Positions 3,311-57,684 are shown, counted from the stretch's first letter. The stretch is 64,000 nucleotides of DNA from Heteronotia binoei (GCF_032191835.1 NC_083232.1:56110001-56174000); one strand, 5' to 3'. Translations and numbers: made by a program. Notes: generated by a model not told the origin, from the sequence alone.

Positions 3311-4331
3311 CAGTGGGGTGCCGCAGGGCTCGGTACTGGGTCCCATGCTCTTTAACTTGTTCATAAATGATTTAGAGTTGGGAGTGAGCAGTGAAGTGGC
3401 CAAGTTTGCGGATGACACTAAATTGTTCAGGGTGGTGAGAACCAGAGAGGATTGTGAGGAACTCCAAAGGGATCTGTTGAGGCTGGGTGAGTGGGCGTCA
3501 ACGTGGCAGATGCGGTTCAATGTGGCCAAGTGCAAAGTAATGCACATTGGGGCTAAGAATCCCAGCTACAAATACAAGTTGATGGGGTGTGAACTGGCAG
3601 AGACTGATCAAGAGAGAGATCTTGGGGTCATGATAGATAACTCACTGAAAGTGTCAAGACAGTGTGCGTTTGCAATAAAAAAGGCCAATGCCATGCTGGG
3701 AATTATTAGGAAGGGAATTGAAAACAAATCAGCCAGTATCATAATGCCCCTGTATAAATCGATGGTGCGGTCTCATTTGGAGTACTGTGTGCAGTTCTGG
3801 TCGCCGCACCTCAAAAAGGATATTATAGCTTTAGAGAAGGTGCAGAAAAGGGCAACCAGAATGATTAAAGGGCTGGAGCACTTTCCCTATGAAGAAAGGT
3901 TGAAACGCTTGGGACTCTTTAGCTTGGAGAAACGTCGACTGCGGGGTGACATGATAGAGGTTTACAAGATAATGCATGGGATGGAGAAAGTAGAGAAAGA
4001 AGTACTTTTCTCCCTTTCTCACAATACAAGAACTCGTGGGCATTCGATGAAATTGCTGAGCAGACAGGTTAAGACGGATAAAAGGAAGTACTTCTTCACC
4101 CAAAGGGTGATTAACATGTGGAATTCACTGCCACAAGAGGTGGTGGCGGCCACAAGTATAGCCACCTTCAAGATGGGTTTAGATAAAAATATGGAGCACA
4201 GGTCCATCAGTGGCTATTAGCCACAGTGTATGTGTGTATATAACATTTTTTGCCACTGTGTGACACAGAGTGTTGGACTTGATGGGCCGCTGGCCTGATC
4301 CAACATGGCTTCTCTTATGTTCTTATGTTCT
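3311..4331 (+). mobile_element. 5'-truncated young CR1 LINE with an uninterrupted 300-codon RT C-terminal frame
   Basis: [41 protein letters not shown]; 3' tail (ttcttatg)n. Confidence 0.95.
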
Positions 4332-8429: not shown

Positions 8430-9560
8430 AAATCATAGAGTGGAAGGGACCTCCAGGGTCATCTAGTCCAACCCCCTGAATGATACACCCCCAGTGACAC
8501 CTGCTCCACAGCCAGAAGATGGCAAAAAAAATTCTCCAGGATCCATGGCCAAACTGGCCTGAAGAAAAATTCTTGCCTGACCACCTAAGTGGTGAACAGC
8601 ATTTCCTGGGCATGTAAGAGGGGACTACAAGAACTAATGCAACCCTTCCTGCCCTCTTTCTCATGAGCTGCCTAAGTTTAGAGAATCAGCACTGCTGTCA
8701 GATGGCCATCTAGCCTTTGTTTGTAAACTTCCAAAGAAGGAGAGCCCACTACTTCCCAAGGAAACCTGTTCCACTGAGGAAACACTCTGTCAGGAAGTTC
8801 TTACTAATGTTTAGCTGTAAACTCAATTTCATTTCAACCTGTTGGTTCTTGTCTGATCTTCTGGGGCCATAGAAAACAACTCCACACCATCCTCTATATG
8901 ACACCCTTTCAAGTACTTGAAAATGGTGATCATTATCACAGTCTCTTCTCCAGGCTAAACATACCCAGCTTCTTCAGCCTTTCCTCGTAGGACTTGATCT
9001 CCAGACCCCTCTTCTTTGCCCTCCTCTGGACACATTCCTGTTTGTCTATATCCTTCTTAAACTGTGGTGCCCAAAACTGAACACAGTACTCTAGGTCAGG
9101 TCTAACCAGAACAGAGCAAAGCAATACCATCACTTTGTGGGACCTGGACACTATACGTCTGTTGATATGGCCCAAAATCACATTTGCCTTTTTAGCTACC
9201 ACATCACACTACTGACTCATGTTAACATAGTCCACTAAGATTCCTAGATCCTTTTCACACATACTAGTGCCAGGACATGTCTTCCCCATCCTATAATTAT
9301 ACATTGGATTTTTCCTACCTAAATGTAGAACTACATTTATCCCTATTAAAATTCATTTTATTTGTTTTAGCCCAGTTTTCCAGCCTGTCAATATCATCCT
9401 ATATCCTGTCTCAGTTTTCTACCGTATTTGCTACTCCTCCAAATTTAGTATCATCTGCAAATAAACATTCCTGCTATTCTTTCATTTAAGTCATTTATAA
9501 AGATATTAAAGGACAGATCATTAAGGCATTCCACATGCCACTCCTCTCCAAGAGGATGAG
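8430..9560 (-). mobile_element. CR1 LINE, 3' part (host of the L1)
   Basis: [41 protein letters not shown] and FADD-region remnants; CR1-type 3' end near 8430-8480. Confidence 0.85.
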
Positions 9561-12500
9561 TTTAAACACAATTTTATTGATAACATATGGTAACCATATC
9601 CATTAATACCTTATTTTTATCTATCCCATATGCTATTTTCTAGTCCCCCCTCCCCCCATTACTTGACTCCCGCCGAAGTTATATACCTAAAATACTAACA
9701 TTTAAAGGTACCCTTAAACCATAAGAACCTATATTCATATTCTACTTTTTTCTAGTACTTGATCATTTTTAAAAAATTGTCCAATATCCTTTTATATTCC
9801 ATTCCTCTTCTACATAACATCTAAACTTTTTCCACTCCTTTTCATACACTTCCAAATCATAGTCTTTTAAGATTCTTGTTAGTTTGTCCATCTCACTCCA
9901 TGTTATAACTTTTACAATCCAATCCAATTTTTCTGGTATTTTTTCTTGCTTTCATAACTGCGTATACAATGTCTTAGCCACTGAAAGCAAGTACCAGATC
10001 AAAGTTCTATCTGCTTTTGGAAAGTTTTCCATTTGTAATCCCAATAAAAAAAGTCTCTGCTACTTTCTTGAATTCATATCCCAAGATCTTTAAAATTTCT
10101 TGTTGAATCATCTGCCAATACTTTTTCACTCTTTCACAAGTCCACCACATATGGTAAAAAGAACCTTCATGTCTTCAACATTTCCAACATCTGTCTGGAA
10201 TCTTTTTATTCATCTTTGCCAATTTTTTAGGAGTCATATACCACCTATACATCATCTTAAAACAATTTTCTTTTATACTCTGACATGTTGATAATTTCAT
10301 AGAGTTCTTCCAAAGATACTCCCATGTATCCATCTGTATTTCTTTATTTACATTGATTGCCCACTTAATCATTTGAGATTTTACTACCTCATCTTCCATA
10401 GACCATTTTAACAGTAACTTATATATTTTTGAAATTAATTTCTCATTATCTCCAAGCAGAACTTTTTTCATTTCTGTTTGCTCACGTCTTATTCCTTCAG
10501 TTTTGATATCATTCTCCACCAGGCTTTTTATTTGTTGCATTTGAAACCAATCATATTTTTTATTCAGCTCCTCAGCAGTTTTCAATTCTATTTTGCCACT
10601 TTGTATTTTTAGTAATTGATTGTATGACAACCCTCTCTCTTCACTGATTTCAGCTGTTATTTTTATTACTTCTGCTGGCACTATCCATGATGGCTTTCTC
10701 TCATCACCATATTTCTTGTACTTCATCCATGTATTTAACAAATTATTTCTGATATAATGGTGAGAAGAAAAACCATCCATCTTTTTCTTTCCATACTACA
10801 TATAAGCATGCCAGCCGAATTTATTTCCATGAGCTTCCGACATTAAAAGTTTTTTATTCAACAGCATCATCCAGTCTTTTATCCATACTAAGCAAACTGC
10901 ATCATGATATAGTCTTAAATCTGGTAGCTGGATTCCTCCTCTCTTTAGTATCTGTTAAAATTTTCATTTTAATCGTTGGTTTCTTCCCAGCCCATACAAA
11001 TTCTGAAATCTTCCTTTGCCATTTATTAAATTGTTTGCTATCTTTCACAATCGGAATGATTTGAAACAAATACATTATTCTCGGCAGAATATTCATCTTA
11101 ATTGCAGCTATTCTGCCCAGCAATGACATATTAAGTTTATTCCATTTCACCATATCTTCATCCATCCTATGCCATAGCTTTTCATAGTTATTTTTGAACA
11201 AATCAATATTCCTCATTGTTATCTCCAAGCCCAAATACTTTACTTTAGAAGTAACTTCACATCCTGACAGTCTCTGCAATTCCTTTTGCTTATTTACTTG
11301 CATGTTTTTACATAAAACTTTCAATTTTTCTTTATTAACATAAAGTCCCACCAGCTCTCCATATTCTTGTATCTTGGCTAACAGCAAAGGTATTACTTGT
11401 ATAGGATTTTCAGCTACAAACATTATATCATCAGCAAATGGTCTATATTTATAAGTAAATCCTCTAATTTTCAGCCCTTCTATTTTTTATCATCAAATAT
11501 TTGCATCAACAAAATTTCAAGAGTCATTATAAACAATAATGGTGAAAGCGGACAACCTTGTCTTGTACCTTTACTGATCATCATATCCTCTGTGAGGTCT
11601 GCATTTATACACAACTTTGCTCGCTGTTCCATATATATATATATATTGCTTTTATCATTCTTATGAAATGTTCTCCAAGTTCCATCTTTTCCATTACTGC
11701 AAACATAAAGTCCCAGTTCAAATTATCAAAGGCTTTCTCTGCATCCGCAAAAAATAATGCGACTTCCTTTTCTGGATGTTTTTCATAATATTCTACAATA
11801 TTTACAACTGTTCTTACATTGTCTCTTATTTGCCTTTTAGGGAGAAATCCTGCTTGATCTTCCTTTATGAAGTTAATCAAATATTGTTTAAGTCGTTCTG
11901 CCAAGATTCTTGTGTATATCTTATAATCATTATTTAATAATGAAATTGGTCTGTAATTCTGTACATTCATAACATCTCTATCTTCCTTGGGGATCAACGA
12001 AATTACAGCTTCTTTCCAAGTGTTTGGTATTTTTCCTTTTATTCTTATCATATTCATCAATTTTTGCAGTTTTGGTACTAATTCTTCTTTAAAGGTTTTG
12101 AAAAATTTAGCCATATATCCATCTGGCCCAGGTGCCTTTCCCATTTTCACTGCATTAATTGCTGCTTCAATTTCAATTTTTTCAATTGGATCATTCAAAA
12201 TTTTCTTCATATATTCAGTTAAGGGTGCTATTTTAATATTTTGCAAATATACTTCAGTCTTTTCTTTTTTTAATCTTAACACCCTTAAATCAATTAGCAT
12301 AATACTTAAAAATTATATTTTTATTCCTCCTTGATCTACTATCTCTCTTCCATCAGCCACAATTTTATTAATAATTTTACTTTCTCTCTTTTTCTTCAAT
12401 TGCCAGGCTAAATACTTTCCAGGTTTATTCGCACCCTCAAAAGATTTCTGTTGCAGTTTTTTCAAATTCCATTCTACTTCTTTATTTAACAAATGTCTCA

Positions 12501-15206
12501 TTTGGGTTTGTAATATAGTAATCTCCCTTATAATTGTCTTTTTCCCTGGTCTTTTTCTCAATTCACCTTCTTTTTTCTTTATCTCATATTGAATGTCCAA
12601 TCTCTTGGGGTTTTTTCGCTCTTTTATCCTCATTGTTTAATGTAATCAATATTTCTCTCATTACAGCTTTGTAAGCGTCTCATACCATCTGGAACTCTAT
12701 ATCATCTTTGTCATTTATTTTGAAAAAACCTTTAGTTTCATTTTCTAAAAATGTTACAATTTCTTTATCTTGTAGCAAATTTCATTTATTTTCCATCTAC
12801 TTGTTTTTCTTTGCAGTTTTGTAGCCCATAATATTGGATTATGATCCGCACTTATCTTTGGAAGAATCTCTACTTTTTTAGTTATGAGGCCCAAATCCTT
12901 AGTACCCTATAACATGTCAATTCTGGAAGAAGTATTGTGTCTTGCTGAAAAAAAAGTATAGTCTCTTACTTCAGGGTTAAATTTTCTCCAAATATCTTCC
13001 AAATGTTATTGTTTAACCAGTTCAAAAAACGATTTTGGCAATTTTCCTTCCTTGTTATTACTTTTTTGGCCAGATCTATCTATTTTATTCTGTATTGTTC
13101 CATTAAAATCTCCCATCATCAAGATCTGATCATAAGTCACTTCATCCAACTGTCTTATAATGTCTTTTAAAAAAACATCTTTTGCACCATTTGGTGCATA
13201 CAGTCCTAATAACAATGTTTTTTTCCCATTAATCATTATCTCTACTGCTATATATCTTCCGTCTTTATCTTTAAATACCAATTTTGGCTCTAATTGCTGA
13301 TTAATATAAAAAACCACGCCCCTTTTCTTTTGTTCAGCCAATGACAAAAATTCCAGTCCTAATTGTTTATTCCATAAAAATTTGTAATCTTTTGTTGTAT
13401 ATGAACTTCTTGTAAACAAATTATATTACAATTTTGTTTTTTAATCCAATGAAATGTTGCTTTTCTTTTTTGTGGTGAATTTAGTCCATTTACATTCCAA
13501 GATAATAATTTGTAATCCATCATGGTGCAAAGTCTTTGTTTTGTTCGTAAAAACTAGACAACTCATGTGCATTTGTGATTGTAATCCTCTTTCCATGTAG
13601 CTCAAAACTCAAGCCTTCAGGTATTATCCATCTATATCTTATTTCATTAGCACACAATTTCTCTGTCAGTTTCTTGTATGTTTTCCTATCATTTATCACT
13701 TGTCTTAGCAACTCTTTCATTATTCTGACTCTGCTCCCTCCTACAAATTCAAAATTTCCCCTGCCATGTCTTTTGTCATAAATTTTATATCTCTTGGAAA
13801 ATTTTTGTTCTTGGCATATGATGAGTTAACTCTGTACATGTTATCATACATATTTCTAGTCCCTTCAGGATCTTTCTCCAAAAAGTCAGCAATTATTTTC
13901 ACCATATATTCCTTTAAGTCAGTTCCCTCCCCTTCAGGTACTCCTCTCAGAAGAACTTGAGTTTCCATCATTCTGCAGTCATGTATTGTCACCTTCTTTT
14001 GCAGCTTCAGCAAGGTGGAATCATGTACTTTAACTTTCTCCTCTACATCCTGGACTTTTTTTGTGACTACCACCACGTCATTTTTAAAATCTTCCACTTC
14101 CTTTTTAAGATCTCCACTATCTTTTTAAAGTTCTTTTTTAAAGGCTGTTAACATCTTGTCAACTCCTTTCATTATTTAGCTTCCATCGCTTCTAGTTGGT
14201 CATGCATTTTTTCCAAAGAGAGAGCTCTTGCACGTGTTGTTTTTGACTCTGACATTAAAGAAAGCCTATGAAAATTTTAACGTCTCAAAATCAAAATAGC
14301 AGATTCAATAACTTAGAACTTGCCCTTTTAAATAAGCCTAATTTCGCCATTCTATGACCTTCCTGGGCTTAGATATTAATTTTTAAAAGTTTTATTTTTT
14401 TCAAAATGGTGATCGCAATTTCTCTATAGTAAAAAATCCTAGAGTAGGCCTTCTTGTTCATCTCTTTTATCTTATTACTTCCTGCTTTGCTAGGTAGCAG
14501 ATCCCATTCTCAATGGTATCCAAATCTCACAGTCTTTGTTAGTCTCACTTCCCTTGTTACTTCCTGCTTTGCTAGGCACCAAGTATCATCCTCAATGTTA
14601 TCCAAGTCTCATGATCTTTGACGTACTTCCTGTATTGATTGTAGAGAATGCAGAGCTGTGACACTGATGCTTTCATCGATGTCCACAGGTATTTCAAACA
14701 AATACTTCTTTCCCAATTTTTAGCATTGTCCTTATTTTAACAAAGTCCAAAGTTCAATCTTTCTTTTCTTTGTCTTCCCCTCTTTCTAGATCACTCCTTC
14801 CCACCTTCCAAAATTATTTAGTTTGCCTTTAAAAAGTCCCAGAGCGAAAGATTGTAATCAGTTACCTCTCCACTGATATCCAGCTTAGCTTCGGTCTCTT
14901 CAAATATCAGATGTTCATCAGTCCTAAAAGATCTTAGGATCTTGTCAAGCTTATGCCAATTGAATGGCTGTATAAGCCTCTGTAGATGATGAAAAACGCC
15001 ACTCTTCTCCAGGGGTCCCTCAAAGCCTGTAAGGAGCCCCCAACGGAGCTCCCTATCAGCCAAGGTTAACTGTGTTTCTGTGGGTATCCTGGACAAATCT
15101 CTAACTGAGAAATGTAGGCAGAAGGACAAAGAAACCTACCCTGAACAGAGGCTTAAGACTGTCCCCGTTCAGAGGACAGCTCAGCACGATTCCCAAACCA
15201 GAAGCC
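9561..15206 (-). mobile_element. Full-length (~5.65 kb) degenerate L1-clade LINE: 5'UTR ~14256-15206, ORF1 14255-13520, ORF2 13520-~9780
   Basis: ORF2 begins MDYKLLSWNVNGLNS (APE endonuclease; LLLGLYAPN, MGDFNG). RT motifs KAPGPDG, YRPISLLNNDYK, DAEKAFD, QGCPLSP, FADD; C-terminal RCWKC. AATAAA at 9578-9573. 20-bp TSD 9541-9560 vs 15207-15226 (17/20 identical). Frameshifts and stops present. Confidence 0.92.
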
Positions 15207-19045: not shown

Positions 19046-20399
19046 AAAACACTTATAACTAACTGTTGGCTAGTGTGGTTGTACAAATCTTGGTGTCTGG
19101 ATTTATTAACCAAATCAGCCTATAGGATTCAAGAATTATTGTGTCTTTTTTTTTTAGGGACAACGATAGCATTCATTTCATACCAAGTTTGTGAGATGCT
19201 ATCTTGAAATAATGCATAATTACAGGTAGCAGTAAGGGGTAGGCTTGCCAGGTTCAACTCAGGAAATATCTGGAGACTTCAGGTGTGGAGACAGGAGCAA
19301 GGTTGTGACAAGCACGACTGAACTCCAAAGGGAGTTCTGACCATCACATTGAAAAGAAGTTCTGGCTCTTTTTAAATGCCTTTCCTCCTTTGGAAATCAT
19401 GGAGAATTGAGGCACCTTCTTTTGGGTCCAATCTTTTTAAACTTGGGGGGTTTATTGAGGAGAGGTACCAGATGGTATGAGGAAAATCTGGTGCCTCTGA
19501 CTCAAAAAGCAGCTCACCAGAGGCTCAAATATTCACAGATTGATTCGCCAAGATTATTTGTTGCTGTATGATAAGTACTTTTGTTTCTGTACAATAAGTA
19601 CTTTTGTATGAGATAATTGAATGTTGGAAATATTCTAAGTATTTTTACTGAACCTGTTGTGTTCTACCTTTATGAGTATGTGTTTTGGAGGTTGGTTGTC
19701 ACAGAAACTATTGTTTTGATCCTTCCAATTCCCAGTTGGGGGCAGGGGATCCCCTGGTTTGGAGGCTCTCCCCCACTTCAGGGTTAGCAGAAAGCAGGGA
19801 GGGAATGTCTGCTGGGCATACCCATTTTACCAGTCCCCACAGAGTCTAATGGAGCCATATCCAAGAGCGGTAAGATGACATTTCCTTTATAATTATGCAT
19901 ATGGAGTTGATGTGTGGTTTATGTTTCATAGCTTATTATATAGCCTTGATTTGAACTTTTCAGTTCACTGATGAAGGTGACCGGAATGAGACCTGTACTG
20001 GATTTTTCTTTGAATTTGGGATTGTGAATTTCGGAATGAACACTGGATTCTTCTATGCCTAGGATGGTACTTTGTGAACTGAGGATTGCATATTTAGGGA
20101 TGAACTTTGTACTCTTCTATGCCTGGATTATTCTTTGATAATTACATCTACTTGATCACGGGAAGAATATTGTGTATTAGCCGTAGATTAAGGAGAACAT
20201 GTTGCTGGTGGACATGAGCACAGAATGAAGTTCCGGAGTCCTAAAGTGGTTAAAATGGACTGCACCACTTCAGACTGCAAGAGGATGGAATCCCCTTTCA
20301 ATATTCTTTGCAATTTTAAAAAACTGTCTGCACATTCAAAGCCAGTATAGCAAGGAGAAAGCTTCTAACTCTTCCCCTTTGCTTACTGTGCTGGCTTCC

Positions 20400-21850
20400 T
20401 ACTTGCAGGGCGTTTTTAACAATGAGAAGAGTATTCCAAAAAGGCGAATCCCCCCCCCCCTGCAATCTGAAGTGGCGCAGCCCACTGTACGACCTCATTT
20501 CTCTTCGCACGTATGCATCAGATATAAACTTTGGGCAACAGCCTGGGATGACAACGTTGGAGCTGCTGCGGGTATCTTCGGCAGTGGGTGCAGCTGGTGG
20601 CTGCTTGGTCAGACCTTTTATCACGTTTTCATCTTGGCCCAAAGCCGTCAAAACGTATGGACTCCACCTCTGACACAGCCAGGGCCTCGCAGTTCCGCTC
20701 TACCGAGCTCAAGATGCGCCGCCTCTCTTCCCTCTCGCTCCCCAGCCCCGTCTGCTACTCTCGCCCCTCTAGTGCCAGCTGCCTCTCCTCCCCCGCCAGC
20801 CACGCAACGCTCAGCTCTAGCAACCCTCTCGCCTCTTCGCTTCCTTGGAGTAACACATCCAACCGCGGCAGCCGATGGTGGAGCTGCAAGCAAACTCCTG
20901 TTGGGGAGGCCCAGGCTCAGCCCGCCTCGCGGCTCTTCGTCTACCTAAGTCCCAAAGCCGGCGCAGCAGCGACAGCGAGGAGGAGCACCAGCTCCGGCAG
21001 GCCCTTCCAAGGCGCCCAGAGAGGAGGGACGCGGCTCTGCCATGCTGAGTCCGGCACTGACAGCCTCACGTGCAGGCAACCGGGAGGAAAGGCGCGCACA
21101 ACGCACGGCAGAAAATGCCGCTGCTCTTCTGACAAGGCCTTCTTGCCCAGGGTCGCTCCTGCTGAGACTCCGCCAGCCGCATCCGGGAGAAAGCTGGGTC
21201 CTGCCTAGCTGGAAAGAGCCACCTGCGTGAAGAAGAGTGAGGGCCGGAAATCCCACGCACTTTTGCCGCTTGGCTTTTGTGCAGGACCGGGCTGAGGCAC
21301 ATCAGCGCAAAGTGTGCCGCCCACCTCAGGCGCTGCCACCGGGAACCGCAGCGGGGAGGAGATGCCCCAGCCCGCCTGCTCGGGGTTGGAGGAATTGTAT
21401 GCAGCCGCGAGGCAACGGAAGAAGAGCGGCTGGGAATGGGTGCCGCCTCTAAAGAAAGCAGCCGGTACTCGTTAAAAGGCGAGGGACTTTGAGCGGACTT
21501 AAAAGAGAGAGAGAGGCATGTAGTTTGGCCCATTGTGTTTTTCCTGTGACTCTCAGTGGCTGTTGCAACGGAAGGGGAACCAATCGCTACAGAATGAGTG
21601 CGGCCCACTGAACGTTGGGAAATGTCGCCGATCCTCCTGGCTATTCAGAAGCAGCCAATGCATTCCAGTGGCTATTGGATGCCATCCTTTTAAACATGAC
21701 CCACGGCAAAGGTGCGCAGAAAGGCGGGGTTTAACTTTCCTGCATGTCAACTGAATGTACATTACAGGAAGCCGGTGGGAAGCTAAACTTGCTGCTGGCA
21801 TGCAACGCCATCTTGAATCTGTAAACTATGAAGTGCCCGGACTCAGCAAT
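20400..21850. promoter_or_regulatory. CpG island with promoter-like motif cluster, not attached to an intact gene
   Basis: High CpG density. CCAAT at 21580 and 21655, ATTGG at 21674, GGCGGG at 21723, CGCCATCTT (YY1-type) at 21806. Confidence 0.75.
20577..20948 (+). pseudogene. NFE2L3: Possible relic of NFE2L3 exon 1
   Basis: One open frame without any ATG carries WWLLGQTFYHVFIL (20595), GPRSSAL, PAASPP and RFLGV (20838), collinear with human WWSAGGGLLHLTLL, GPASSAY, PAAPP and RALGV. It lies in a CpG island upstream of the exon-4 relic. GC-rich sequence inflates chance P/A/S matches. Confidence 0.4.
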
Positions 21851-24517
21851 TACATCCTGTGATTTTCAAATTCCATATATACGTAGACTGGTAGTTTACT
21901 TAAGGAGTTCAGAGCAGCATTCTTCTTCGTTTCACATTATTTAGGTGCGACCCTTAGCTCCCCCCAAAAATTATTTGACATCCCTTTATTATGTGTGTGT
22001 TGTATGGAAACTTAATAAAACCTTGAGCATTAAACAGACTTGTCTCCAAGCCCAGTTATGGGGCTGAGAGGGAAGGAGCTTAGTCTGATCCATTAGGTTC
22101 CTGCAACATTCCTTACACATCCTTTGCCCCTTCCCACTCCTCCCCTCTGTTACTTTGCAGGATGCATGGGACCAAATTTGTGTTTTCAGTCCAATCCTAT
22201 GTATGTTTATTCCAAGTTGCTCCCAAATAAAATTGTTTTTGGCTGTGGCAATTCCATAGGTATTTGACAACTTACAAACCTAGGGTTAGTGGTTTATGGA
22301 ATTCTGTGAGGCCAGAATGTGGTACAGTCCTGTATATTTGGGGCAGTGTTCCCTCTAAGCTGAGTTAATGTGAGCTAGCTCATGGGTTTTTTAGCTTCCA
22401 GCTCACACGTTTTTGTCTTAGCTCAGGATTAATTTATTTTACTAATTTATGCAGTAGCTCACAGCTTTAATGCCAGTTACTCACAGAGCAGAGTTTTTGC
22501 TCATAAGACTCCACAGCTTAGAGGGAGTATTGATTTGGGGATATTTCACTAATGTGCAGTGTATGGTATAGATGCCAAGCCAATTTTGGACTCCTAGGAA
22601 AAAGCAGGATTCACCTCTCAGATGGAAAGGTCACACTCATACATGCCTTCCTTATCTGGAAAATCAGGAGATATAAGAGAGGGTGATTTTTAAATCTGCA
22701 TGATTTTCTCGAGAAAAAATTTGTTCCCTCCATTTCTATATCTAAAAAATGTCATTCAGCTTTTGTTTTTGTTAAAACATCACTGCAGGTTTCACCTTTA
22801 TATTCTAAAAATTCTGTACAGTTTTCCAAAACCATTAGTGCTGGTTCTGCCTCTTAGTGAGATCTACAGGAATTCTGTGCTGACTGTGATGTGGTTTTAA
22901 GCTTTAATATCCTTTTGATTAAAGAGAACACACTGTATTATAGATTGCCAGCTCAGAGCTGCAACATAGTTAAATTAGGCTACTGCAGAGCCATATTAAG
23001 AATATATATACTTCAGTCATTCCAAAAGATTATCAGGCTTCTGTATGGGAGAGAATTTTCTTTCCCTCCCTCCCTCTAACCTTATGTGTTGGATTATTTA
23101 GATGAATAGTTATATTCCGCCTATACGGAGGTTGAACAGCACCTTAAATTGTATTTTTAAATTGTTATTTTATCATTTTAAATTACAATTGTAAATGTTT
23201 TGAACTGATTTATTTTATTTTAATCTTATACCCTGCCCTGAGTCGCTTTAAGAGAGGGCAGGGTATAAGATTAAAGCGATTTATGAAAGCTCATACCCTG
23301 TCACAGATTTTGTTAAGTCTTTAAGATGCTACTGGACACTTTTCTGGTGTATATTAGTGTGTAATCAATATTGTCCAGTACCAACACAAAGTTGTTGCAG
23401 TAAATTTCAGTGCATTTACAGAATGAATCTCACACAGAGATAACCTTTATGGGCAATTAACAGCATTATTCATGTTTGTTTGATAGATATTTGCCTCAAA
23501 AGCATACTTATTTTGCTGCTGTTTAATTCTTTCCACAGCTGATGTTTAATAACGTGTAGGATACTGTCCTGTATTTTGTGCTTGTATGCTTATAAATCCT
23601 ACAGATTTCTGAAGTTTTCAACCCAGTTGGTCAGATGTATGCTTGCTCAGAGTGAAGTCCCATTTTGTTCAATGGAACTTACTCCCAAGTAAGTATGCAT
23701 AGCACTGCAGCCTTGAACAAAGATACAGAACTTCATGAAAAGCAACCAGGGTTGTCAACAGGCTTTAACAGAAATGTCATGTCATTTAATACAGGTTTAA
23801 GATTAGGAAATGGGCAGTAGAAGTTTTTCATAGCATGGTGGTAAATAACACCACTCAGCAAAAAGCATCCCTATTCAGTCTCTATTAAAAGGACAGAGCA
23901 TTTCTGTTGTTAACCCTAAAAGCAACCATGCATAGTTTAAACGGTACATATTTAAAACTACTCAATCCATCACACGTGTCATGTAATGAATACATACGTA
24001 TTGTTATCAAATGTGCTTCCTTTCACGTGTATCCTTAGACATGTACATACTCTCTAACTTGGGTTCAGGACACTCAACTGGCCAGACCCACAACCAATTT
24101 GGGGGGATTGAGCTCAGTGTCAGGAAGAAACCTCTTGTTTCCAGAGCTGAATTAGCTTGGGAAACTGACACACTTGCCAATTAGGGAGAGCAGCAGAGCA
24201 ATGATTTAGGGATCATTACCTGGTCTTTTTCAAAGCAAGTTTTGGAATTTATTGAAAGAAATATCGGAGTACATGAATGGAAAAGGTGAACAGAACTGTG
24301 AAATCGTTGTGTACAGGAGGATGTAAACATGAAGAATTAAAGAGAGAAGAAAAAGTGAAAGAGAGCCAGGCCTCTGGCTGACTGAAAAATCTGCACCGGG
24401 AGGACTGAGAAACATGGGGTTTTTTAAAAAAGGAGAGTTTTTAAGAGAAAACAAAAGAACAGAAAAGTTTACCTATCCTCAGTCTGCTGAGCTGGGTAGA
24501 TTATGTTGTCTGTTCAG

Positions 24518-27335: not shown

Positions 27336-27509
27336 AGGTGACTGAAACTATTACAGGTCCTAGTCAGAAAGGACCTTTTTGAGACTGCTGTGGCTCTTTA
27401 GGAAGCAGCTGATGTTGTGAGCCCAACAAAACAGAAATAAGATTTTAAATTCCAAGTAACATTTGCTAATGTTAACAAATTAGTAACATTTGCTAATTTG
27501 CTAACATTT

Positions 27510-29104
27510 GGGGTGTTGAAAGACCTGAGTCAGATTGAGGTGACAAGAGAGGTCCTACAACTAATGGACGAATTAAAAACTAATAAGTCACCGGGTCCGG
27601 ACGGCATACATCCAAGAGTTCTGAAAGAACTCAAAGTTGAACTTGTGGATCTTCTGACAAAAATCTGTAATCTTTCATTGAAATCTGCCTCCGTTCCTGA
27701 GGACTGGAAGGTAGCAAATGTCACCCCCATCTTTAAAAGGGGTTCCAGAGGAAATCTGGGAAATTACAGGCCAGTCAGTCTGACGTCAATACCGGGAAAG
27801 TTGGTAGAAACCATTATCAAGGACAGAATGAGTAGGCACATTGATGAACACAGGTTATTGAGGAAGACTCAGCATGGGTTCTATAAGGGAAGATCTTGCC
27901 TCACTAACCTGTTACAGTTCTTTGAGGGGGTGAACAAACATGTGGACAAAGGAGACCCGATAGATGTTTACCTTGACTTCCAGAAAGCTTTTGATAAAGT
28001 TCCTCATCAAAGGCTCCTTAGAAAGCTCGAGAGTCATGGAGTAAAAGGACAGGTCCTCTTGTGGATCAAAAACTGTCTGAGTAATAGGAAGCAGAGAGTG
28101 AGTATAAATGGGCAGTCTTCGCAGTGGAGGACGGTAAGCAGTGGGGTGCCGCAGGGCTCGGTACTGGGTCCCATGCTCTTTAACTTGTTCATAAATGATT
28201 TAGAGTTGGGAGTGAGCAGTGAAGTGGCCAAGTTTGTGGATGACACTAAATTGTTCAGGGTGGTGAGAACCAGAGGATTGTGAGGAACTCCAAAGGGATC
28301 TGTTGAGGCTGGGTGAGTGGGTGTCAATGTGGCAGATGAGGTTCAATGTGGCCAAGTGCAAAGTAATGCACATTGGGGCCAAGAATCCCAGCTACAAATA
28401 CAAGTTGATGGGGTGTGAACTGGCAGACACTGACCAAGAGAGAGATCTTGGGGTCATGGTAGATAACTCACTGAAAATGTCAAGACAGTGAGTTTGCAAT
28501 AAAAAAGTCCAACGCCATGCTGGGAATTATTAGGAAGGGAATTGAGAACAAATCAGCCAGTATCATAATGCCCCGGTATAAATCGATGGTGCGGTCTCAT
28601 TTGGAGTACTGTGTGCAGTTCTGGTTGCTGCACCTCAAAAAGGATATTATAGCATTGGAGAAAGTCCAAAGGGCTGGAACGCTTTCCCTATGAAGAAAGG
28701 TTGAAACGCTTGGGATTCTAGCTTGGAGAAATGTCGACTGCGGGGTGACATGATAGAGGTTTACAAGATAATGCATGGGATGGAGAAAGTACTTTTCTCC
28801 CTTTCTCACAATGCAAGAACTTGTGGGCATTCGATGAAATTGCTGAGCAGACAGGTTAAAATGGATAAAAGTACTTCTTCACCCAAAGGGTAACATGTGG
28901 AATTCACTGCCACAGGTGGTGGCAGCCACAAGCATAGCCACCTTCAAGAGAGGTTTAGATAAAAAATATGGAGCAGAGGTCCATCAGTGACTATTAGCCA
29001 CAGTGTGTGTGTGTGTGTATATATATGTATAATTATATTTTTTTGCCACTATGTGAAAGTGTTGGACTGGATGGGCCATTCTAACATGGCTTCTCTTATG
29101 TTCT
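27510..29104 (+). mobile_element. 5'-truncated CR1 LINE, same subfamily as 3311-4331, frameshifted
   Basis: [45 protein letters not shown]; ttctcttatgttctt tail. Near-identical to the 3.3-kb copy. Confidence 0.95.
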
Positions 29105-29150
29105 TAAATAATGTAGTGGGTTTTTTTTTTTTTTTAAAGTTGCTCTAAAT

Positions 29151-29387
29151 CAGGGGTGACCAAATGGAGGCACATGTGGCTTTCACACACACTGTGTGGC
29201 TCTCAAAGCCCCCACTGCCCCATCAGCCAGCTTGGAGAATGCATTTAAAGTTGTCTTTCCACTTCTCCCTCCCTCCCATCTGTCTTCCTTCCTCCCTCAC
29301 TTCATTGACACGTGGCTTTCAAGCATGTAGTTTATTCTATGTGGTTCTTACATTAAAGCAAGTTTGGCCCACCCCTGCTGAAAATCA
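29151..29387. mobile_element. hAT-like MITE
   Basis: caggggtgaccaaa ... tttggccccacccctg-like ends; TSD imperfect. Confidence 0.55.
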
Positions 29388-31179
29388 TTAGTGTAATTGC
29401 AAAAATAAATCTTAAATGTGGGGTGCTTGGCAAAGGTTTTATTAAAACCTATCATTACCCTTTACTTACCAAGACAGAGATTATGGGGCTGCAACGAATT
29501 TTAGTTGCTGTATGTCATAATCGCATGACCTATGACTCCTCTTGCTGAAAATATATAGCAAATAATTTCCATTTACTTCCGATTTACAGGTTTAATTTTC
29601 CATTATTAACATTTTAACTTGCACTTGTTTTTCATAGTCCCTTGACCATGCTATCTGGGGTTAAGTAAGGACCTAACTTTTGGGAGGAATACAATTAAGC
29701 TGGCCTGAAACTCCCAGTTTTTTGCAGGACTTCAGCTGAGTCACTCATCAAATTCAGTAGTAATTGCCTTCCAGTAACTGATTTGCATACTCGCCTGAAG
29801 AACCTGCTTAAAAATTGATCCCATGCTTAATCATAACTATTAAATGGAAGATCCTACTGTAATGCTGGGCTTGAGTGGTGAACTGGATGCAGCTTTCAAG
29901 TCCTTTGGGTAATTCAGCATTTTAAATTTGTTCAGTGGACAGTACTGTACTTGCACAAAGGATGCCAGATTTTAAATCCATCAACATTCCCCTCCACATG
30001 TTAACTGCACCACATCAAGGAGTGCCAGAAGCAGGTTTTCCATGCATGGACGGACTTGGAACTCCCCCCCCCCCTCCCCAATTGTTATCCTATCCAAGCC
30101 AGCGTCTACAGTGGGACCAACAGGGGTAGGATCCTTTGCCTAACCTGAAACATTAAGCTTCTTCTCAGCCTACCTTGCATACTCGTGAAGATAAAATGGA
30201 TAACCATGTATGCTTCTTGGAGGAAAGGTGGGATAAAAAACTAGGTGCAGATGCTGGAAAGTTATTTATTCTCATTAGGGTCAAAAAGTTCCATAGAGAA
30301 AACTTCTAGCTATCCATTAGCTCATTCTGTAGGTGACCATAAGCAGCTTTGATCAGGAATGCTCTCAGTATGCTGATTTATATGTTCTTTTTATATTCCT
30401 GCGTATCAGAGTGGCTCTTTCTGCACATAACTCTTCCCAACTTACTCAAAACCTGCTAGATATAAAAACCTGCTGGATATGTATTTACACCTCATTATAT
30501 ACTTTTACTTTTTTTCAGGTCAAATACAAGGAGATTCTGTATCTGGCAGATATATTTTACACTGCTTTTAAAATCCAACAGCATAAAGGAAATAACCATT
30601 ATTAGGATCAGCTGGAACTCTTCTTAAGCAGGTTAAGATGAACACACACAAACGGGGAGGATAGCCAGAAAAGAGGCAGCCTCAAAAGATGCAACCACTT
30701 AGTCTTAAAAACTGCAGACATTAATTTGACCAGAACTTTTATAGTACGCAGTTTTTGGTTTTTAGTTTGGCTCCTGAACAGCAAGTTATCGTTAAAAGAT
30801 AGAAAGCACAAACTAACAGACGACAATGTTATATGGATATCAAACTGGCTACTTGCAGTTTCTGTATAGTACTGTCAGCTACTCCTTTTAGTTTTTGGCA
30901 TTTTTGTTAATGGTCATACTTTTGTTAGCTGATCCTAAAGAAAACATTTAGCTGTCTTTAAAGAACTATTAAAAAAGTGTTTTGGAATTACACTGAAACT
31001 TAAAATTTCAGGAATATAAAGCAATACTATTGACGATCCAGCAAAGAGACCTTTTCAGGAGCTAAGCAAACATACTTGAAACACCACCACCCCCCACTTT
31101 AGGAACATTTGTTATGAAATATTTTGCCAATCAGTAGCAAAAGAAATGTGTATTTGTTGACACCATACAATAGATTCTG

Positions 31180-31860
31180 CCTCCATTGTTAGTTGTGATG
31201 TCAGCCTTCTTGTTACTAATTAGGATGATCAATACTCATAGTAAATTGAGGAAGAAGAAACTGGGAGATACAGGAGACTGTCAAAAAATTCTGCTCTAAC
31301 TTATTCTAATCTGTCACTTGTGTTGACGTGACAGTGATGCCAAATCTGCCAGTTGTGATAGAAAGCTTGTTGGAGGTTACCACTAGTAAATGGGCTAACA
31401 AAGTAACTATGGCCATTGTGCAGAATATCTTGTAGGTGTGTTTTCAGAACCACACACATTGTCACATCAACTGTTATCTCCATTACTGTGCTACCTACCA
31501 TGACCAAAGGAATCCAATAAAACCAGAATTAGAAACAGAGAGAAATCAACTGTGCAAAAAGCCCTGAGAATTCCTTTCTCTGAAAATGAGTTACCTTGTT
31601 TATTTAACATGTTATAAAAATAATATCTGATAATCAACTATCATTTGTGACATAAAGCAGAAATGGAAAAGTTGTCTTAAATATCACTTAGCCTCATAAA
31701 AAGAAAATGGAACGGTCTTTACTGGAACATTTTCAGACAAGAGATATGGGGGAAGACCTGTTAACCCAAGCCAATACACTGTTCACCTGCTGCTGAAATA
31801 ACAATGTTTTGGCTGTGCCTGGGAAAATAATCCAATCTGAGCCTAAAAATATATCTTAGA
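31180..31860 (+). pseudogene. NFE2L3: Decayed last (CNC-bZIP) exon of NFE2L3/Nrf3
   Basis: Collinear blocks across shifting frames, relic vs recalled human NFE2L3: VSCDVSL (AISQDVNL); LVGGYH (AVGGYY); FQNHTH (FHNHTY); KALRIPFSENE..FNML*K*YL at 31558-31629 (KALHIPFSVDE..FNSMLSRYYL); CDIKQKWK (RDIRRRGK); SLIKRKWNGLYWNIFR (NIMKQKLHDLYHDIFSR); GRPVNPSQYTVH at 31751-31786 (GRPVNPNHYALQ). Multiple stops and frameshifts. Position and strand match mammalian synteny. Confidence 0.85.
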
Positions 31861-32419
31861 AATTTTGGAAATTTAAATACCATTATTCAGAAGTGTACAA
31901 TACAGGATATGAGTAAACAATATGGTAAGCGAAATCATACACACCTTGAAAGAAAAGCCAAGCAATAGCAAAACTCTACCTCGCTTAGCATTTTACTAAA
32001 CACGTAAATTATAGAATTTATGCTGAAAATTTGAGTGATACACCTTTCTGTGATAGCGAAACATTTTGCCTGTTAATTGTTCTTTGTGTTCACTACTCCT
32101 GTAAGAAAACCATTATATAACTAGCCATTCAAGGCGGTGATCTTAAGTGTACTTCCAGTACAATTCTAAACAGTTACATTTCTCTAAATCCTGCGACTTC
32201 AATGGATTTATAGGAGTATAACTTGTTAGGACTGTACTGTTGAAATCTGGAACAGAGGTTGCTAAAAACTTTAAAACTACAGGTTTTGAATTATTAAATT
32301 TTATCATTATACATTAAAGTACTTTTGCATTCACATGACATTAAGCCCCCATGCATTGTTATGAAGAGAAAAGCGATTCAATACATACACTGAATATTCT
32401 GAAATAACCACTTTGATCT

Positions 32420-32929
32420 CAGGGGCGTTGAACTCATTTATTAGGAGGGCCAGATCTTACACAAATGAGACCTTGTTGGGCCAAGCCATGTTGGGCCGTG
32501 TCATGTATGTACCTATTTAAGATTAGGTAGCAGAAATATAAACTTTATAAAGGGTACAAAGAATTTAATTTAAGCTTAAATCATTAGCACTTTTTGGTCT
32601 TAAAGGTACATTCTTTGTATCTCTCCCATAGGATCCACGGAACTGGGCAAAGGAAGCTCTGGCTCTCTCCTTCCTTCCCTGGGGACCAGGAGCCTTAGCC
32701 AAAAGTTAGAGGCTTGGTTCAGTAGCTCTGCTGTGCAATTGAGAGCACCTGGCAAAGCAAACTCTCCCTCCCCCTTCTTCTCCAAAGGAGCCTCAGCCAA
32801 TGGAGAAAATAGCTCTGTACCTTCTGTGTGATTGAGCAAGCCTTGCAATGCAGTTATGCAGAAGGAAGCATATGACAGCCAGTTGCTCGGGGGCCTGATA
32901 TGGCCCATGGGCTGGATGTGACACCCCTG
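32420..32929. mobile_element. hAT MITE, same family as 16978-18407, without the LTR
   Basis: cagggg...gacacccctg ends; internal sequence collinear with the 17-18 kb copy. Confidence 0.8.
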
Positions 32930-33764
32930 CTCTAGGTACTAGCACTGAAACCACATTGAATTCCATCTCCTTTCTACTGCTTGACCATTCTGAATGACAG
33001 ACTTGATGGTAGAGTGCTTGCAGATAGGGCAAGGGCAATGAAATGAATCCTGATGCTTCTGCAGGTACATTTCAACTTGGGGAATGTTTTTACTCTCTCA
33101 GAGCTAACCAAAATACCCCCACAAAATCCAGTTTCCCTGGCTGTTGCTTTTTCCCCCGGATGGGAGAAACCTGGCATACACAGGAACTTTAGTCTGAATG
33201 CAGCCTGTGGTCAGCCACATAAAGACACCCAGATATGCAGCAAGTCACTTTTTCAAATTAAAAATATATATACTTTCCTTCAAGAGGCAACTGAACTTAG
33301 AGGAAACAATGAAACAGGGATGGAGAACCAATCAAGTCTTAATTATACTGGAAAGGCAGATCTGAATAAGAGCAAGTCCCCCCCTACCACCAATTCCTCA
33401 TGGACCTCCGAATAGTCTAAAACAAGTACAGTAGTTCCATAAATATAATATACAATATGTCTATCCTATGAGTTGTCTGCGGAGACAACTGGTTATTAGG
33501 GCAAGCAGAATGAAGTTATGAAGACTTTACAAGCTATCTTAGGTGTGCTGGGAACTATTTATACCACATGTTTTTTTGGCAGTTGAAAGCCATGATCCTA
33601 AATACACACAAACTGCATACCCTCATACAACATGGTTTGTAAGCTTTCCGTTTCTATTTTAATGGTACAAATAATGTGTAGACATATTTAAATGCCAAAG
33701 CAGTATAAATGGTAAACAGGCCTTTGACAAATTACTGAAAGGCTGATTTAAAGGGAAATCAGAT

Positions 33765-33935
33765 ATTCCGAGGTCGGTAAAATGAATACCCAGCTTGCTG
33801 GGGGGAAAGTGTAGATTACTGGGGAAGGCAATGGCAAACCACCCCGTAAAAAGTCTGCGGTGAAAATGCTGTGAAAGCAATGTCACCCCAGAGCTGGAAA
33901 CGACTGGTGCTTGCACAGGGGACCTTTCCTTTTCC
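33765..33935 (+). mobile_element. Sauria-type SINE, 3' half
   Basis: Collinear with the 3' half of the 61-kb copy. Confidence 0.8.
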
Positions 33936-34109
33936 CCCCAGGTATCAGAGAAGCTTATTTTCTACACTTTTGGATGAGCAAAGAAAAGAATTTCACTTGA
34001 TTCCCCCTTCTACACTACAGCCAACTCTTCCATGCTGCAGTGCATTTTGTGAGGGTTCCCCCAACCTCCACACATGATTTTAGAGAAGGGTTAAAGCCGG
34101 TTGTAGGGG

Positions 34110-34300
34110 ATGAAATTATTTTTACAGTAGCAGTTCAGAGGGGGAAATCAGTGGCCTAGGGAGACAGTCAACTCTCTCTCTCATGGCAGTCTTCAAACAG
34201 CAGTTGGATTAACACTTGTCAGGGATGCTTTAGGCTAAAGGGGGGGGGGGGGTTTGGACTAGATGGCCCGTAGAGTCCCTTTCCTACTTTACAATTCTAA
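34110..34300 (+). mobile_element. CR1 3'-end fragment
   Basis: tcttcaaacagcagttggat..ttggactagatggcc..caattcta. Confidence 0.55.
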
Positions 34301-34734
34301 GATCTTTTGCTCAAGCAAGCATGGAAACATCTAGTATAAGATGATGAACACAGACACCAAAGGTTTGCCTTGCCAACACTGAATCAGAAGCTATTTGAGG
34401 AACAGAAGAAAGCCATTTCTAAATGGGAACTGTTTAATATAAAGTCTGTGTCTACTGCCTTGAGCTGACAGAAAACTTAATACCTGACTAAGCACTATAG
34501 TTAGATCTTACAACAGCCCCGAAAATTCTGGAAAAACAATACACATTATTCACCATTCATCTTTGAGCAGATTGCCTTATATTCAGCAAAACCCTTTAAG
34601 ATAAAACAGGAACTTCTTGTTACTTTTACCTTCTTAAACAGCATCTACTTTGGAACAAGCTCTGAAACAGTGTCGAAGCGTTAAGAGTTTATAGTTTAAA
34701 TGGTATGAAATATTAAAATGTTATCAGACTAGAA

Positions 34735-35024
34735 ATATTTTTGTATAAAAGTTTATTATGAGTTATAAAAATATGACACAATAATTACTGTCTTTAACAT
34801 TGGTCTTGATTTCCTTTTGACTCAATTCTACAGAATTGCTAAAATTTGATAGTTTTTTTAAAAATCACAAGTCTCTGCACTAATATTCTGTAGTAGTAAT
34901 ATATCCTAAAAGGTTTTTAATAAAAGCAGCAAAGCCAATTATTTTGTGATAACAAATTTCTTATATCTTGGCAGTTTCTGTGGTTGACCACTTCTTCATT
35001 AGTTACCTGCAGGCTGGCACCTTC
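34735..35024 (-). other. HNRNPA2B1: Distal alternative terminal exon of HNRNPA2B1
   Basis: Acceptor tctttttctttggcag|gaaggtgcc...ctgcaggtaactaatgaagaagtggtcaaccacag resembles the recalled human distal UTR. AATAAA on the minus strand at 34757-34752. Confidence 0.55.
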
Positions 35025-35321
35025 CTGCCAAAGAAAAAGAAAGCATCTGAAGAGGTTTATCATATCTTTTCACATCTCCTGTACGAAAATTTCAGCAAAT
35101 GGCTATGAGCCACTGAGGAGACAAACCCATGCCTTTTAGTGTGCCATCTGTACCAAACAGTTAAAAGTTTAAAAACATAATTCAGAGCAAAAAGAAGCAA
35201 CAGGTTATAATCTTGTTAATATGAAGCAAATCCTACTCTGCACAAAATGTTTGGCTTCAACTGTATATTAGAAGTTGCAAGCATTAACTGACAGATAGAG
35301 GAGGGAGCGATAACAAAGCTG

Positions 35322-35580
35322 CACTTACCTGTAATGATTATTCATCAAGTTATCTTCTGTGCAGGCACACATACCCTCCCCCCTCCTGCATGCTCTAGCA
35401 GTGCTAGAGGTACTGAGGATAGATAGCACTGCTGTGCAGGACCAGGTGGTCCCTGGGCAGAAACAAGCTTCTGGCTCCAGTGCAGTGCCCTCTGGAGGCT
35501 CCTAGCTGTAAAGACCTATCCTGTGGGAGGCCTGCTCACGCAGACCCCATGTGGGACTGCACAGAAGATCGATGATGAAC
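35322..35580. repeat. Short element with ~32-bp imperfect terminal inverted repeats (possibly non-autonomous DIRS-like)
   Basis: ttcatcaagttatcttctgtgcaggcacacat (35341-35372) vs atgtgggactgcacagaagatcgatgatgaa (35549-35579). The family assignment is from recall only. Confidence 0.55.
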
Positions 35581-36280
35581 TGACATTAACAAAATGTACA
35601 AGACATCACCATCATAGTCAGTTCCAACCTGCATGCATGTTTTAAGTTCTGCCTCAACTTCTATTTTAGTATCATATGATCCCCTGAACACAACTATTAC
35701 AGTTCTACTAACAAGAATGTGTGTCAGAAACCAATAACAACATTTATTTCTGTTAAGTTCTGCAACAGGAACTTTGAATTTCTACAGCTGCAAGACTTCC
35801 GTGAAACACCTATGTATATCTTATTTTACATACAAATATTAAAAGAGTTAGGCTTTTAGGAAAATTAAGACTGAAGGCAAAAATATAAATTATACCATTT
35901 AAATTAACGGCAACATACCATTTTAACTAACCAGAGAAGGGATGGAACCCTTGCAAAGCATTAACGGACAACTTGGCTGGTTCATTGCTCAGCAGGTCTA
36001 TTGCTTGTCCATGGTGCATAAAGCTAGATTCCAGTAGGGGAAAAAATAGGTTAAGTAACTGAAGTTAAAATAAATGAAATGAAAATATAATAGCCCGAAA
36101 GAAAAAATGAAAAACAAAAACAGAACAGTATTTTTAAAATTTTCAGTGCACAGTTGTTAAATCAGTTCATTGCTATGTTAAACTAAATAACATAACCACT
36201 ATACTGAAACAGTACACTGTCATATAATATTAGTTTCTTGTTTTGGAATATTAAGAAAGGAAAAGTAAATGAGATCTTAC

Positions 36281-36507
36281 CTAAAGAAGTTTAACTGAAG
36301 CTTAGAACTATTTTGCTCTACACCCTCAGCTTTCGTTGGCATCCTTATAAAACTACTGTAGTTAAAGCTCTGCAGAAGTACAGCACAGCTTTTTAAGACT
36401 GGCTGAACTTAGTGCCGTTCTCAAGAGTTCTCTTGCACTAGACCTGTGTCCCTGGAAGAGTACCTCGCTGGGGATATTTCCTTTCCTTGCCATTGAAGAA
36501 GCAGCAT
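36281..36507 (-). other. HNRNPA2B1: Alternative non-coding 3'UTR exon of HNRNPA2B1 (candidate NMD-coupled)
   Basis: Pyrimidine tract with ttttag|atgctgc acceptor and ctttag|gtaaga donor. Mammalian HNRNPA2B1 is known to splice within its 3'UTR. Confidence 0.6.
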
Positions 36508-36699
36508 CTAAAAGATCTAAAAAGGTGTTTCTCCTTGCAGAGATATCCCTTATGTTATCTAGATATTTAAACCTGGTAATTTACAGAAAACATTATCTGA
36601 CCAGCATTTCACATGTACAACAATAACTTTGTGGTATTTGTGGGACCTTCTACTACCCACTCCTTGCCTTAATTTACAAAGTATCTTAAATAAATCTAT

Positions 36700-37126
36700 N
36701 NNNNNNNNNNNNNNNNNNNNNNNNNNNNNNNNNNNNNNNNNNNNNNNNNNNNNNNNNNNNNNNNNNNNNNNNNNNNNNNNNNNNNNNNNNNNNNNNNNNN
36801 NNNNNNNNNNNNNNNNNNNNNNNNNNNNNNNNNNNNNNNNNNNNNNNNNNNNNNNNNNNNNNNNNNNNNNNNNNNNNNNNNNNNNNNNNNNNNNNNNNNN
36901 NNNNNNNNNNNNNNNNNNNNNNNNNNNNNNNNNNNNNNNNNNNNNNNNNNNNNNNNNNNNNNNNNNNNNNNNNNNNNNNNNNNNNNNNNNNNNNNNNNNN
37001 NNNNNNNNNNNNNNNNNNNNNNNNNNNNNNNNNNNNNNNNNNNNNNNNNNNNNNNNNNNNNNNNNNNNNNNNNNNNNNNNNNNNNNNNNNNNNNNNNNNN
37101 NNNNNNNNNNNNNNNNNNNNNNNNNN
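36700..37126. other. Assembly gap inside the HNRNPA2B1 3'UTR
   Basis: Run of N. Confidence 1.
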
Positions 37127-37375
37127 TGTTATTTCGAAAACCTGAAGCTGTTCTGTTACCTCTGGGCTCATCCTCTCCTATTTATACAGTGAAGCCTGTT
37201 TCAACAGAAGTAAAGAGTAAAAAAATAGGTTATGAAGTTATCCATCTAACCAGTTTCTTTTTAAAGGAAAGATAATATGATCCTAAAAAACTTTTACCCC
37301 TGCAGCTAAATCCAGAAACAATGCAATTTCAGCACTTAAAAAAAGCACACTCACCCATGAAAAGTTTACAGAAGC

Positions 37376-48469
<11,094 letters not shown>

Positions 48470-50487: not shown

Positions 50488-57684
<7,197 letters not shown>

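Follow-up and report, generated by a model that had tools for sequence, protein, structure and literature searches.

The window analysed here is a 64-kb stretch of the genome of a gekkonid gecko, Heteronotia binoei (C10:56110001-56174000). It contains HNRNPA2B1 on the minus strand, CBX3 on the plus strand and the decayed remains of NFE2L3, also on the plus strand. The coding exons of HNRNPA2B1 (38325-43847, minus strand) translate into RRM1, RRM2 and a glycine-rich tail. The conserved 3' region of this gene lies at 34655-37664 (minus strand), is 70-89% identical to four squamates and includes the stop codon (37376-37378), which on the minus strand follows the protein end GGYGGRSRY. Positions 36700-37126 of this region are masked as N. 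The exons of CBX3 (53488-56373, plus strand) translate into chromodomain, hinge and chromoshadow domain, and a CpG island at 47-49.6 kb lies between the two genes. An intronless copy of HNRNPA2B1 was looked for and none was found.

Two further observations concern the surroundings. In one part of the HNRNPA2B1 3' region, 35711-37664, identity to skink, amphisbaenian, lacertid and boa is 84-89% over about 1 kb, and this part is present in many small sequence-capture-sized runs from at least 12 other organisms; it looks like an ultraconserved-element locus. The window also contains LINE fragments with reverse-transcriptase-like ORFs at 3318-4220, 8936-9202 and 27498-29011, and on the minus strand at 10175-14097, as well as high-copy interspersed repeats at 29050-29421, 32398-32955 and 33700-34257, which are covered hundreds to thousands of times in DNA sampled at 0.45x. 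The repeat at 32.4-32.9 kb has a further copy at about 18.1-18.5 kb.

NFE2L3 (Nrf3) is an ER-anchored CNC-bZIP transcription factor of jawed vertebrates. The remnant of its last exon (exon 4) is found at 31103-31862 on the plus strand. Represented in it are the serine/acidic region, the beginning of the CNC domain and the C-terminal tail. An earlier interpretation made without database searches, here called the sequence-only reading, had placed an NFE2L3 pseudogene at 31180-31860 from seven collinear peptide blocks. The exon 4 relic is indeed there, but it is longer than proposed, and more relics of the gene are present at 20.9-23.0 kb. In the translation of 31100-31900 the peptide blocks that had been named occur at the places given for them, KALRIPFSENE starting at 31558, NGLYWNIFR at 31711 and GRPVNPSQY at 31751, in differing frames and with stops between them.

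The similarity of these blocks to NFE2L3 goes well beyond chance. Reference proteins were collected with the CNC-bZIP domain of the gecko NFE2L1 as query against 1.84 billion representative proteins. Among the best 150, those closest to the window are named NFE2L3, from Hemicordylus capensis, Pantherophis guttatus, Trachemys, birds, a frog, coelacanth and bowfin. Further NFE2L3 searches added Tiliqua, Lerista, Rhineura, Candoia, Liasis, Ahaetulla, Naja, Elgaria, Varanus, Anolis, Zootoca, Lacerta, Podarcis, turtles, Gavialis and many mammals. In tblastn searches of the 64-kb window, squamate NFE2L3 proteins give highly significant collinear matches at 31161-31877, with summed E-values of 8.6e-14 for Lacerta agilis, 1.4e-12 for P0162, 1.7e-11 for Lerista, 3.7e-10 for Zootoca and 1.3e-9 for Tiliqua. 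A profile of 16 sauropsid NFE2L3 proteins was run on all 4192 stop-to-stop pieces of the window, and seven of the eight top pieces lie at 31161-31856 (plus strand), collinear with profile positions 235-607 of 616.

The same relationship is seen at the nucleotide level. Against the Hemicordylus NFE2L3 gene, blastn of the window gives E=5.7e-30 and 2.3e-21, and against the NFE2L3 loci of five squamates E is as low as 6e-30. The exon 4 relic is 61-67% identical to five intact squamate exons, while these exons are 72-86% identical to each other. The relic retains 230 readable codons, with 51% identity to Hemicordylus.

Two other candidates in the window were rejected as chance matches not collinear with NFE2L3. 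One, at 50751-50795 in a CBX3 intron, is a CNC-like peptide that resembles a basic region and contains a stop, and the other is the piece 34160-34270, with a profile E-value of 0.023.

The CNC-bZIP paralogs have motifs in common, and the gecko's own paralogs do match the relic, if weakly, so one could read it as a fragment of NFE2L1, NFE2L2 or NFE2, as a retrocopy or as a chance similarity. However, tblastn with the last exons of the gecko's own NFE2L1, NFE2L2 and NFE2 reaches E ~2 on the relic, compared with 1e-13 for NFE2L3 orthologs; the paralogs are thus inadequate as probes. A maximum likelihood (ML) tree was built from 43 NFE2L3 proteins, the three own paralogs and the relic, read through with X at each break. 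The tree places the relic within the NFE2L3 clade (100/99) and, inside this, at the unresolved base of the squamate NFE2L3 clade (100/100), which is where a gecko ortholog would be expected. The terminal branch of the relic is 0.74, compared with a median of 0.064. As for a retrocopy, the intact intron-exon structure of the locus argues against it, with an exon 1 relic 10 kb upstream, a preserved intron block and the retained acceptor AG. Altogether, we regard a retrocopy, paralog fragment or chance similarity as extremely improbable.

The structural evidence comes from a comparison with the NFE2L3 loci of Hemicordylus (L040), Tiliqua, Rhineura, Candoia and Lacerta (L040-L044). Nucleotide collinearity with the squamate loci extends over a promoter block, exon 1, an intron 1 block, exon 4 and the HNRNPA2B1 3' region. 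The promoter/5'UTR block is found at 20874-20975 (plus strand) and aligns by blastn to Hemicordylus L040 9728-9830 with 71% identity (E=6.7e-9); the ATG of that locus is at 10001, so that the counterpart of the block sits just 5' of the NFE2L3 start codon. The relic of coding exon 1 lies at 21263-21470 (plus strand). An nhmmer search with an exon 1 profile from three species identified it as the sole match in the window (27.4 bits, E=1.2e-8), while 300 dinucleotide shuffles of the surrounding CpG island score at most 3.6 bits. Its translation contains the conserved LRE..G.PRFPAA..WL motif with an in-frame stop inside.

An intron 1 block at 22592-23007 (plus strand), in collinear order with the relics of exons 1 and 4, is matched by blastn in Tiliqua, Rhineura and Hemicordylus (E=2e-17, 4e-15 and 7e-12, 60-68% identity). 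Exon 4, 9.8 kb from the exon 1 relic, aligns by blastn to the squamate loci over 31065-31872 with 60-72% identity. The splice acceptor AG of the last exon is kept at 31101-31102 (plus strand) after a pyrimidine tract, and the exon 4 sequences of Hemicordylus, Rhineura and Lacerta align from 31103. This intron boundary shows that the relic is not a processed copy, and the view of the locus as the true ortholog and not a retrocopy is upheld by the collinear promoter, exon 1, intron 1 block and exon 4. Exons 2 and 3 gave no match better than E=0.5 with three- and four-species nucleotide profiles on the window, and have thus been deleted or have decayed past recognition.

The position is also that of the ortholog. 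In Tiliqua, Rhineura, Candoia and Lacerta, the four loci with long enough flank, NFE2L3 on the plus strand is followed by an RRM/HnRNPA1_LC gene (HNRNPA2B1) on the minus strand, and the CDS ends are 5.7-6.6 kb apart. In the gecko window the HNRNPA2B1 stop codon lies about 5.5 kb downstream of the relic, again tail-to-tail. A location tail-to-tail with HNRNPA2B1 and a few kb from it had been assumed from mammals in the sequence-only reading, and it is thus seen directly in squamates. Similar pairs exist elsewhere in the gecko genome, with NFE2 beside HNRNPA1 (C13:28862170-28871606) and NFE2L2 beside HNRNPA3 (C16:35712131-35728342). These are the paralogous counterparts of the NFE2L3-HNRNPA2B1 pair, and the logic of a paralogon fits.

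Two side observations on the compared loci can be added. The LINE fragment at 27498-29011 is inserted in the former intron 3 of NFE2L3 and is 69% identical to an element within the Tiliqua locus. The NFE2L3 annotated in Tiliqua scincoides (L041) has 774 residues and spans 88 kb, starting 79 kb upstream of the exon that matches exon 1 of other squamates; its long N-terminus is probably an annotation fusion.

From these data, we conclude with high confidence that the window locus represents a unitary (non-processed, unduplicated) pseudogene of NFE2L3/Nrf3, located at the ancestral position in a gekkonid gecko.

The lesions in exon 4 were counted from a six-sequence alignment. The relic shows 21 indel events, of which 17 shift the frame, and it lacks 433 of about 1220 nt, a third of the exon's length. 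Eleven stops are found in the ancestral frame, at 31115, 31221, 31247, 31384, 31387, 31396, 31501, 31615, 31621, 31678 and 31794. The frameshifts and the lack of an ORF that had been described are therefore both present, and the two stops that had been singled out, at 31615 and 31621 (31615-31623, plus strand), are both TAA in the ancestral frame and lie inside the CNC domain.

Two large deletions affect conserved regions. The junction of a 224-nt deletion is at 31292/31293 (plus strand), and here the stretch encoding the invariant E-x-D-S-D-S-G-L-S-L block is gone. A 112-nt deletion, with its junction at 31672/31673 (plus strand), has taken away most of the leucine zipper along with the core of the basic region. 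The lost part corresponds to residues ~513-549 of the Hemicordylus protein P0152, within Pfam bZIP_Maf (473-563) and within the segment aligned to the solved Nrf2-MafG-DNA structures 7X5E, 7X5F and 7X5G. The Pfam family PF03131 has no match in the window or its pieces. The exon 4 relic, which has lost the basic region that contacts DNA and most of the zipper used for dimerisation, cannot yield a CNC-bZIP protein.

Independent data were placed on 29050-34600 and bear on the reality of the lesions. Logan contigs from an RNA library of the same species, generated in another study (X1), cover the relic at a depth of 3-11 with no listed differences, and one contig (31112-31386) bridges the junction of the 224-nt deletion. 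Independent contig bridging is listed for this junction and none is listed for the 112-nt junction. Contigs from a close relative, organism B (X3), cover 31344-31608 and 31691-31992, are ~96-97% identical and contain the same broken sequence. X3 differs from the assembly by AGTT after 31738 and by the absence of 3 nt at 31803, and X1 matches the assembly at both places. The additional AGTT implies that the two species had already split when the 4-nt deletion at 31736/7 arose. The whole-genome run X32, sampled at only ~0.45x, has no listed difference in the relic.

It could be argued that an intact NFE2L3 exists but is absent from the assembly, or that the lesions are assembly errors. The assembly consists of 661 contigs with some gaps, and the sampled short-read support is below 1x. 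However, the decayed copy occupies the syntenic locus itself, and no other copy was found when the whole 2.63 Gb was searched. Further, both the same-species X1 contigs and the related-species X3 contigs agree with the assembly and reproduce the lesions that they cover, and dozens of lesions together with a neutral substitution pattern could not be produced by assembly error. We therefore consider this explanation very improbable and the lesions of exon 4 real.

The search for a second copy used Pfam bZIP_Maf (PF03131) and the Hemicordylus NFE2L3 protein on the whole assembly. No second NFE2L3 was found in the assembled genome, and the matches are NFE2L1 (E=1e-55), NFE2L2, NFE2, two BACH loci and MAFs. 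The relic DNA is single-copy in the assembly. NFE2L1 is located on C15, NFE2L2 on C16 and NFE2 on C13, and the last exons of NFE2L1 and NFE2L2 are open, with 446 and 403 codons and complete CNC-bZIP domains. We suggest that CNC-small-Maf (ARE) regulation in this lineage would depend on NFE2L1 and NFE2L2, which are both intact, along with NFE2 and BACH1/2. As a side note, an identical BACH CNC-bZIP exon with the same score is present on C59 (936937-937140), a small contig, and on C1 (83723311-83723514); the C59 copy probably reflects an unplaced haplotig and not a gene duplication.

The substitution pattern in the relic is a neutral one. Where five intact squamates all have the same nucleotide, the gecko departs from it at 23.7, 25.2 and 24.7% of codon positions 1, 2 and 3, while in intact species the same test gives 2-3 times more changes at position 3. 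The equal change at all three codon positions shows that the sequence has evolved neutrally for a very long time. The ML branch to the relic is 0.42 substitutions per site, compared with 0.14-0.27 from root to tip in the intact lineages, and the Jukes-Cantor (JC) distance at the otherwise invariant sites is 0.30. The long-ago loss that had been proposed is thus in agreement with both the codon-position statistics and the very long branch. With homology, synteny, lesions, neutrality and the lack of another assembled copy all pointing the same way, the proposal of a unitary NFE2L3 pseudogene is well founded. The three checks put forward with the sequence-only reading, on the alignment, on a further copy in the genome as assembled and on assembly error, all favour it.

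An exact age is harder to obtain. The local neutral rate was set at ~0.8-1.3e-3 per site per My, from four-fold-site distances of 0.25-0.50 among the intact species and approximate divergence times. At this rate a JC distance of 0.30 gives an age exceeding that of the gecko lineage, and the dating was dropped; the distance is read only as "very old". A faster gecko rate or misalignment in indel regions must inflate the JC-based age. What can be said is that the gene has been drifting during most of the lineage's history. We suggest that selection on NFE2L3 ceased long ago and was followed by drift, with the promoter block, exon 1 and exon 4 persisting as relics. The inactivation is probably ancient, having occurred on the stem of Gekkota or early within it.

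How far the loss extends among geckos was studied in annotated proteins. Identity of the NFE2L2 last exon of this genome is 89% for Gekko japonicus, 88% for G. kuhli and 87% for Paroedura picta, 82% for Euleptes and Eublepharis, 79% for Sphaerodactylus and at most 73% for non-geckos, which places the animal among gekkonids other than Gekko. In word-limited protein searches, on protein sets from which pseudogenes are absent, no NFE2L3 protein was found from Gekko japonicus, G. kuhli, Paroedura, Euleptes, Sphaerodactylus or Eublepharis, while the same six annotated geckos, representing three families, all gave NFE2L2. The same searches gave NFE2L3 from cordylids, skinks, an amphisbaenian, lacertids, an anguid, Varanus, Anolis and six snakes. 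This suggests that the loss of NFE2L3 may span all Gekkota.

One contig with an intact exon 4 (P0072 at L055, from Logan SRR31946008) was considered as a gecko ortholog and rejected, as it is 63% identical to the relic and has only two exclusive states in common with it. P0072 is a squamate genomic exon 4 contig that branches at the unresolved squamate base, no closer to the relic than other squamates are.

A more restricted loss must also be weighed, one that is recent and limited to the genus or a small gekkonid subgroup, while other geckos keep a working NFE2L3. The CpG island at the promoter, described below, is intact, which is easier to understand with a younger death, and organism B, which has the lesions in common with our gecko, is only ~3-4% diverged. 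Against this stand the equal change at all codon positions, the JC distance and ML branch length given above, the 21 indels and the disappearance of exons 2-3. None of the six annotated geckos gave an NFE2L3 protein, compared with six of six for NFE2L2, and the intact P0072, with its two exclusive states shared with the relic, is not a gecko ortholog. A recent and local loss is in our view unlikely, though it keeps some real weight.

The ancestral promoter and exon 1 lie in a CpG island at 20300-21700, with a GC content of 0.58, a CpG observed/expected ratio (o/e) of 0.68 and 80 CpG in 1.4 kb. The corresponding values for the island of the intact Hemicordylus NFE2L3 are 0.625, 0.61 and 84, i.e., the gecko island is equally strong. 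In the rest of the dead gene the o/e ratio is 0.19. An island of this strength would not be expected at a locus that lay silent and evolved neutrally for more than 100 My. Its persistence suggests that the island may still be protected from germ-line methylation and hence still be used. Alternatively, NFE2L3 may have died later than exon 4 indicates.

Expression was examined in one RNA-seq library (X4, 1.0 Gb, 6% sampled) for the exon 4 region only, and the depth is zero over 29422-32397; only the three high-copy repeats in this region (29050-29421, 32398-32955 and 33700-34257) are covered. The contigs from the RNA libraries X1-X3 were rejected as evidence of expression, as their flat low depth extends over intergenic DNA too and X4 has zero depth. 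The flat low depth of the X1 and X3 "metatranscriptome" contigs is most simply explained as DNA carry-over and not transcription. No Rfam family was found in 15-50 kb.

The locus might then be dead as a protein gene and still work as DNA or RNA, with the island driving a non-coding transcript or regulating the neighbours. The o/e ratio of the island, as strong as in the intact Hemicordylus gene and far above that of the gene body, is in line with such a role, as is the promoter block with its 71% identity, while the lack of X4 reads over the exon 4 relic and of any Rfam family speaks against it. We judge a retained function of this kind to be unlikely. It can further be speculated that NFE2L3 became inactive in the stem lineage of Gekkota over 100 million years ago, that all geckos are natural Nrf3 knockouts and that the island was kept unmethylated by being taken over for a non-coding transcript or as a regulatory element of the HNRNPA2B1/CBX3/HOXA neighbourhood. 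This combination, taken as a whole, is decidedly improbable.

Compared with intact NFE2L3, as in Hemicordylus capensis (XP_053119816) and Lacerta agilis, the pseudogene has the same locus, with a gene desert upstream and, on the other side, HNRNPA2B1 in tail-to-tail orientation and CBX3. The exon 4 boundary, the exon 1 motif, the start of the CNC domain (KALRIPFS...) and the GRPVNPSQY tail are all recognisable. Unlike intact NFE2L3, the gecko locus has no ORF, basic region, DSDSGLSL block or recognisable exons 2-3, most of the zipper is missing, and the substitution pattern is neutral.

In protein searches, NFE2L3 is retained in coelacanth, ray-finned fishes, mammals, birds, turtles, crocodilians and most squamates. 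It is also named as a flanking gene in Varanus (PMC7955980). A recent survey of gene loss in squamates covers segmental deletions and in-place decay (PMC13005343). The unitary pseudogenes described there resemble the gecko locus in their in-place decay, conserved syntenic position and lack of a functional copy of the same ortholog, and NFE2L3 is absent from the main text. No report of NFE2L3 loss in any reptile was found in the literature searched. The loss of this broadly conserved factor is thus apparently unreported, while the kind of loss, in-place decay, is ordinary.

The closest experimental parallel is the Nrf3-null laboratory mouse, which likewise has no Nrf3 protein and intact NFE2L1 and NFE2L2. 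The gecko loss differs in being natural, fixed and ancient in a wild lineage, while the mouse allele is engineered. Nrf3-null mice, described by Derjuga et al. in 2004, are reportedly viable and show no overt baseline phenotype. To our knowledge, Nrf3 is one of only three vertebrate Nrf factors driving antioxidant-response-element/proteasome-related genes, and its normal physiological role is, as far as we know, still poorly defined. In Nrf3-deficient mice, the expression of Nrf1 and Nrf2 shows no compensatory change (PMC12310284). NRF3 is ER-bound like NRF1, activates POMP and is degraded via beta-TrCP (PMC7867063).

For annotation, the relic explains why NFE2L3 is missing from gecko gene sets, and it warns against assuming an assembly gap. 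A clade that has long been without Nrf3 would constitute a natural experiment, in which the functions specific to Nrf3, for example the POMP/20S proteasome assembly axis (PMC7867063), would have been either dispensable or taken over by NFE2L1/NFE2L2. The gecko would then offer a comparative system for finding compensatory changes.
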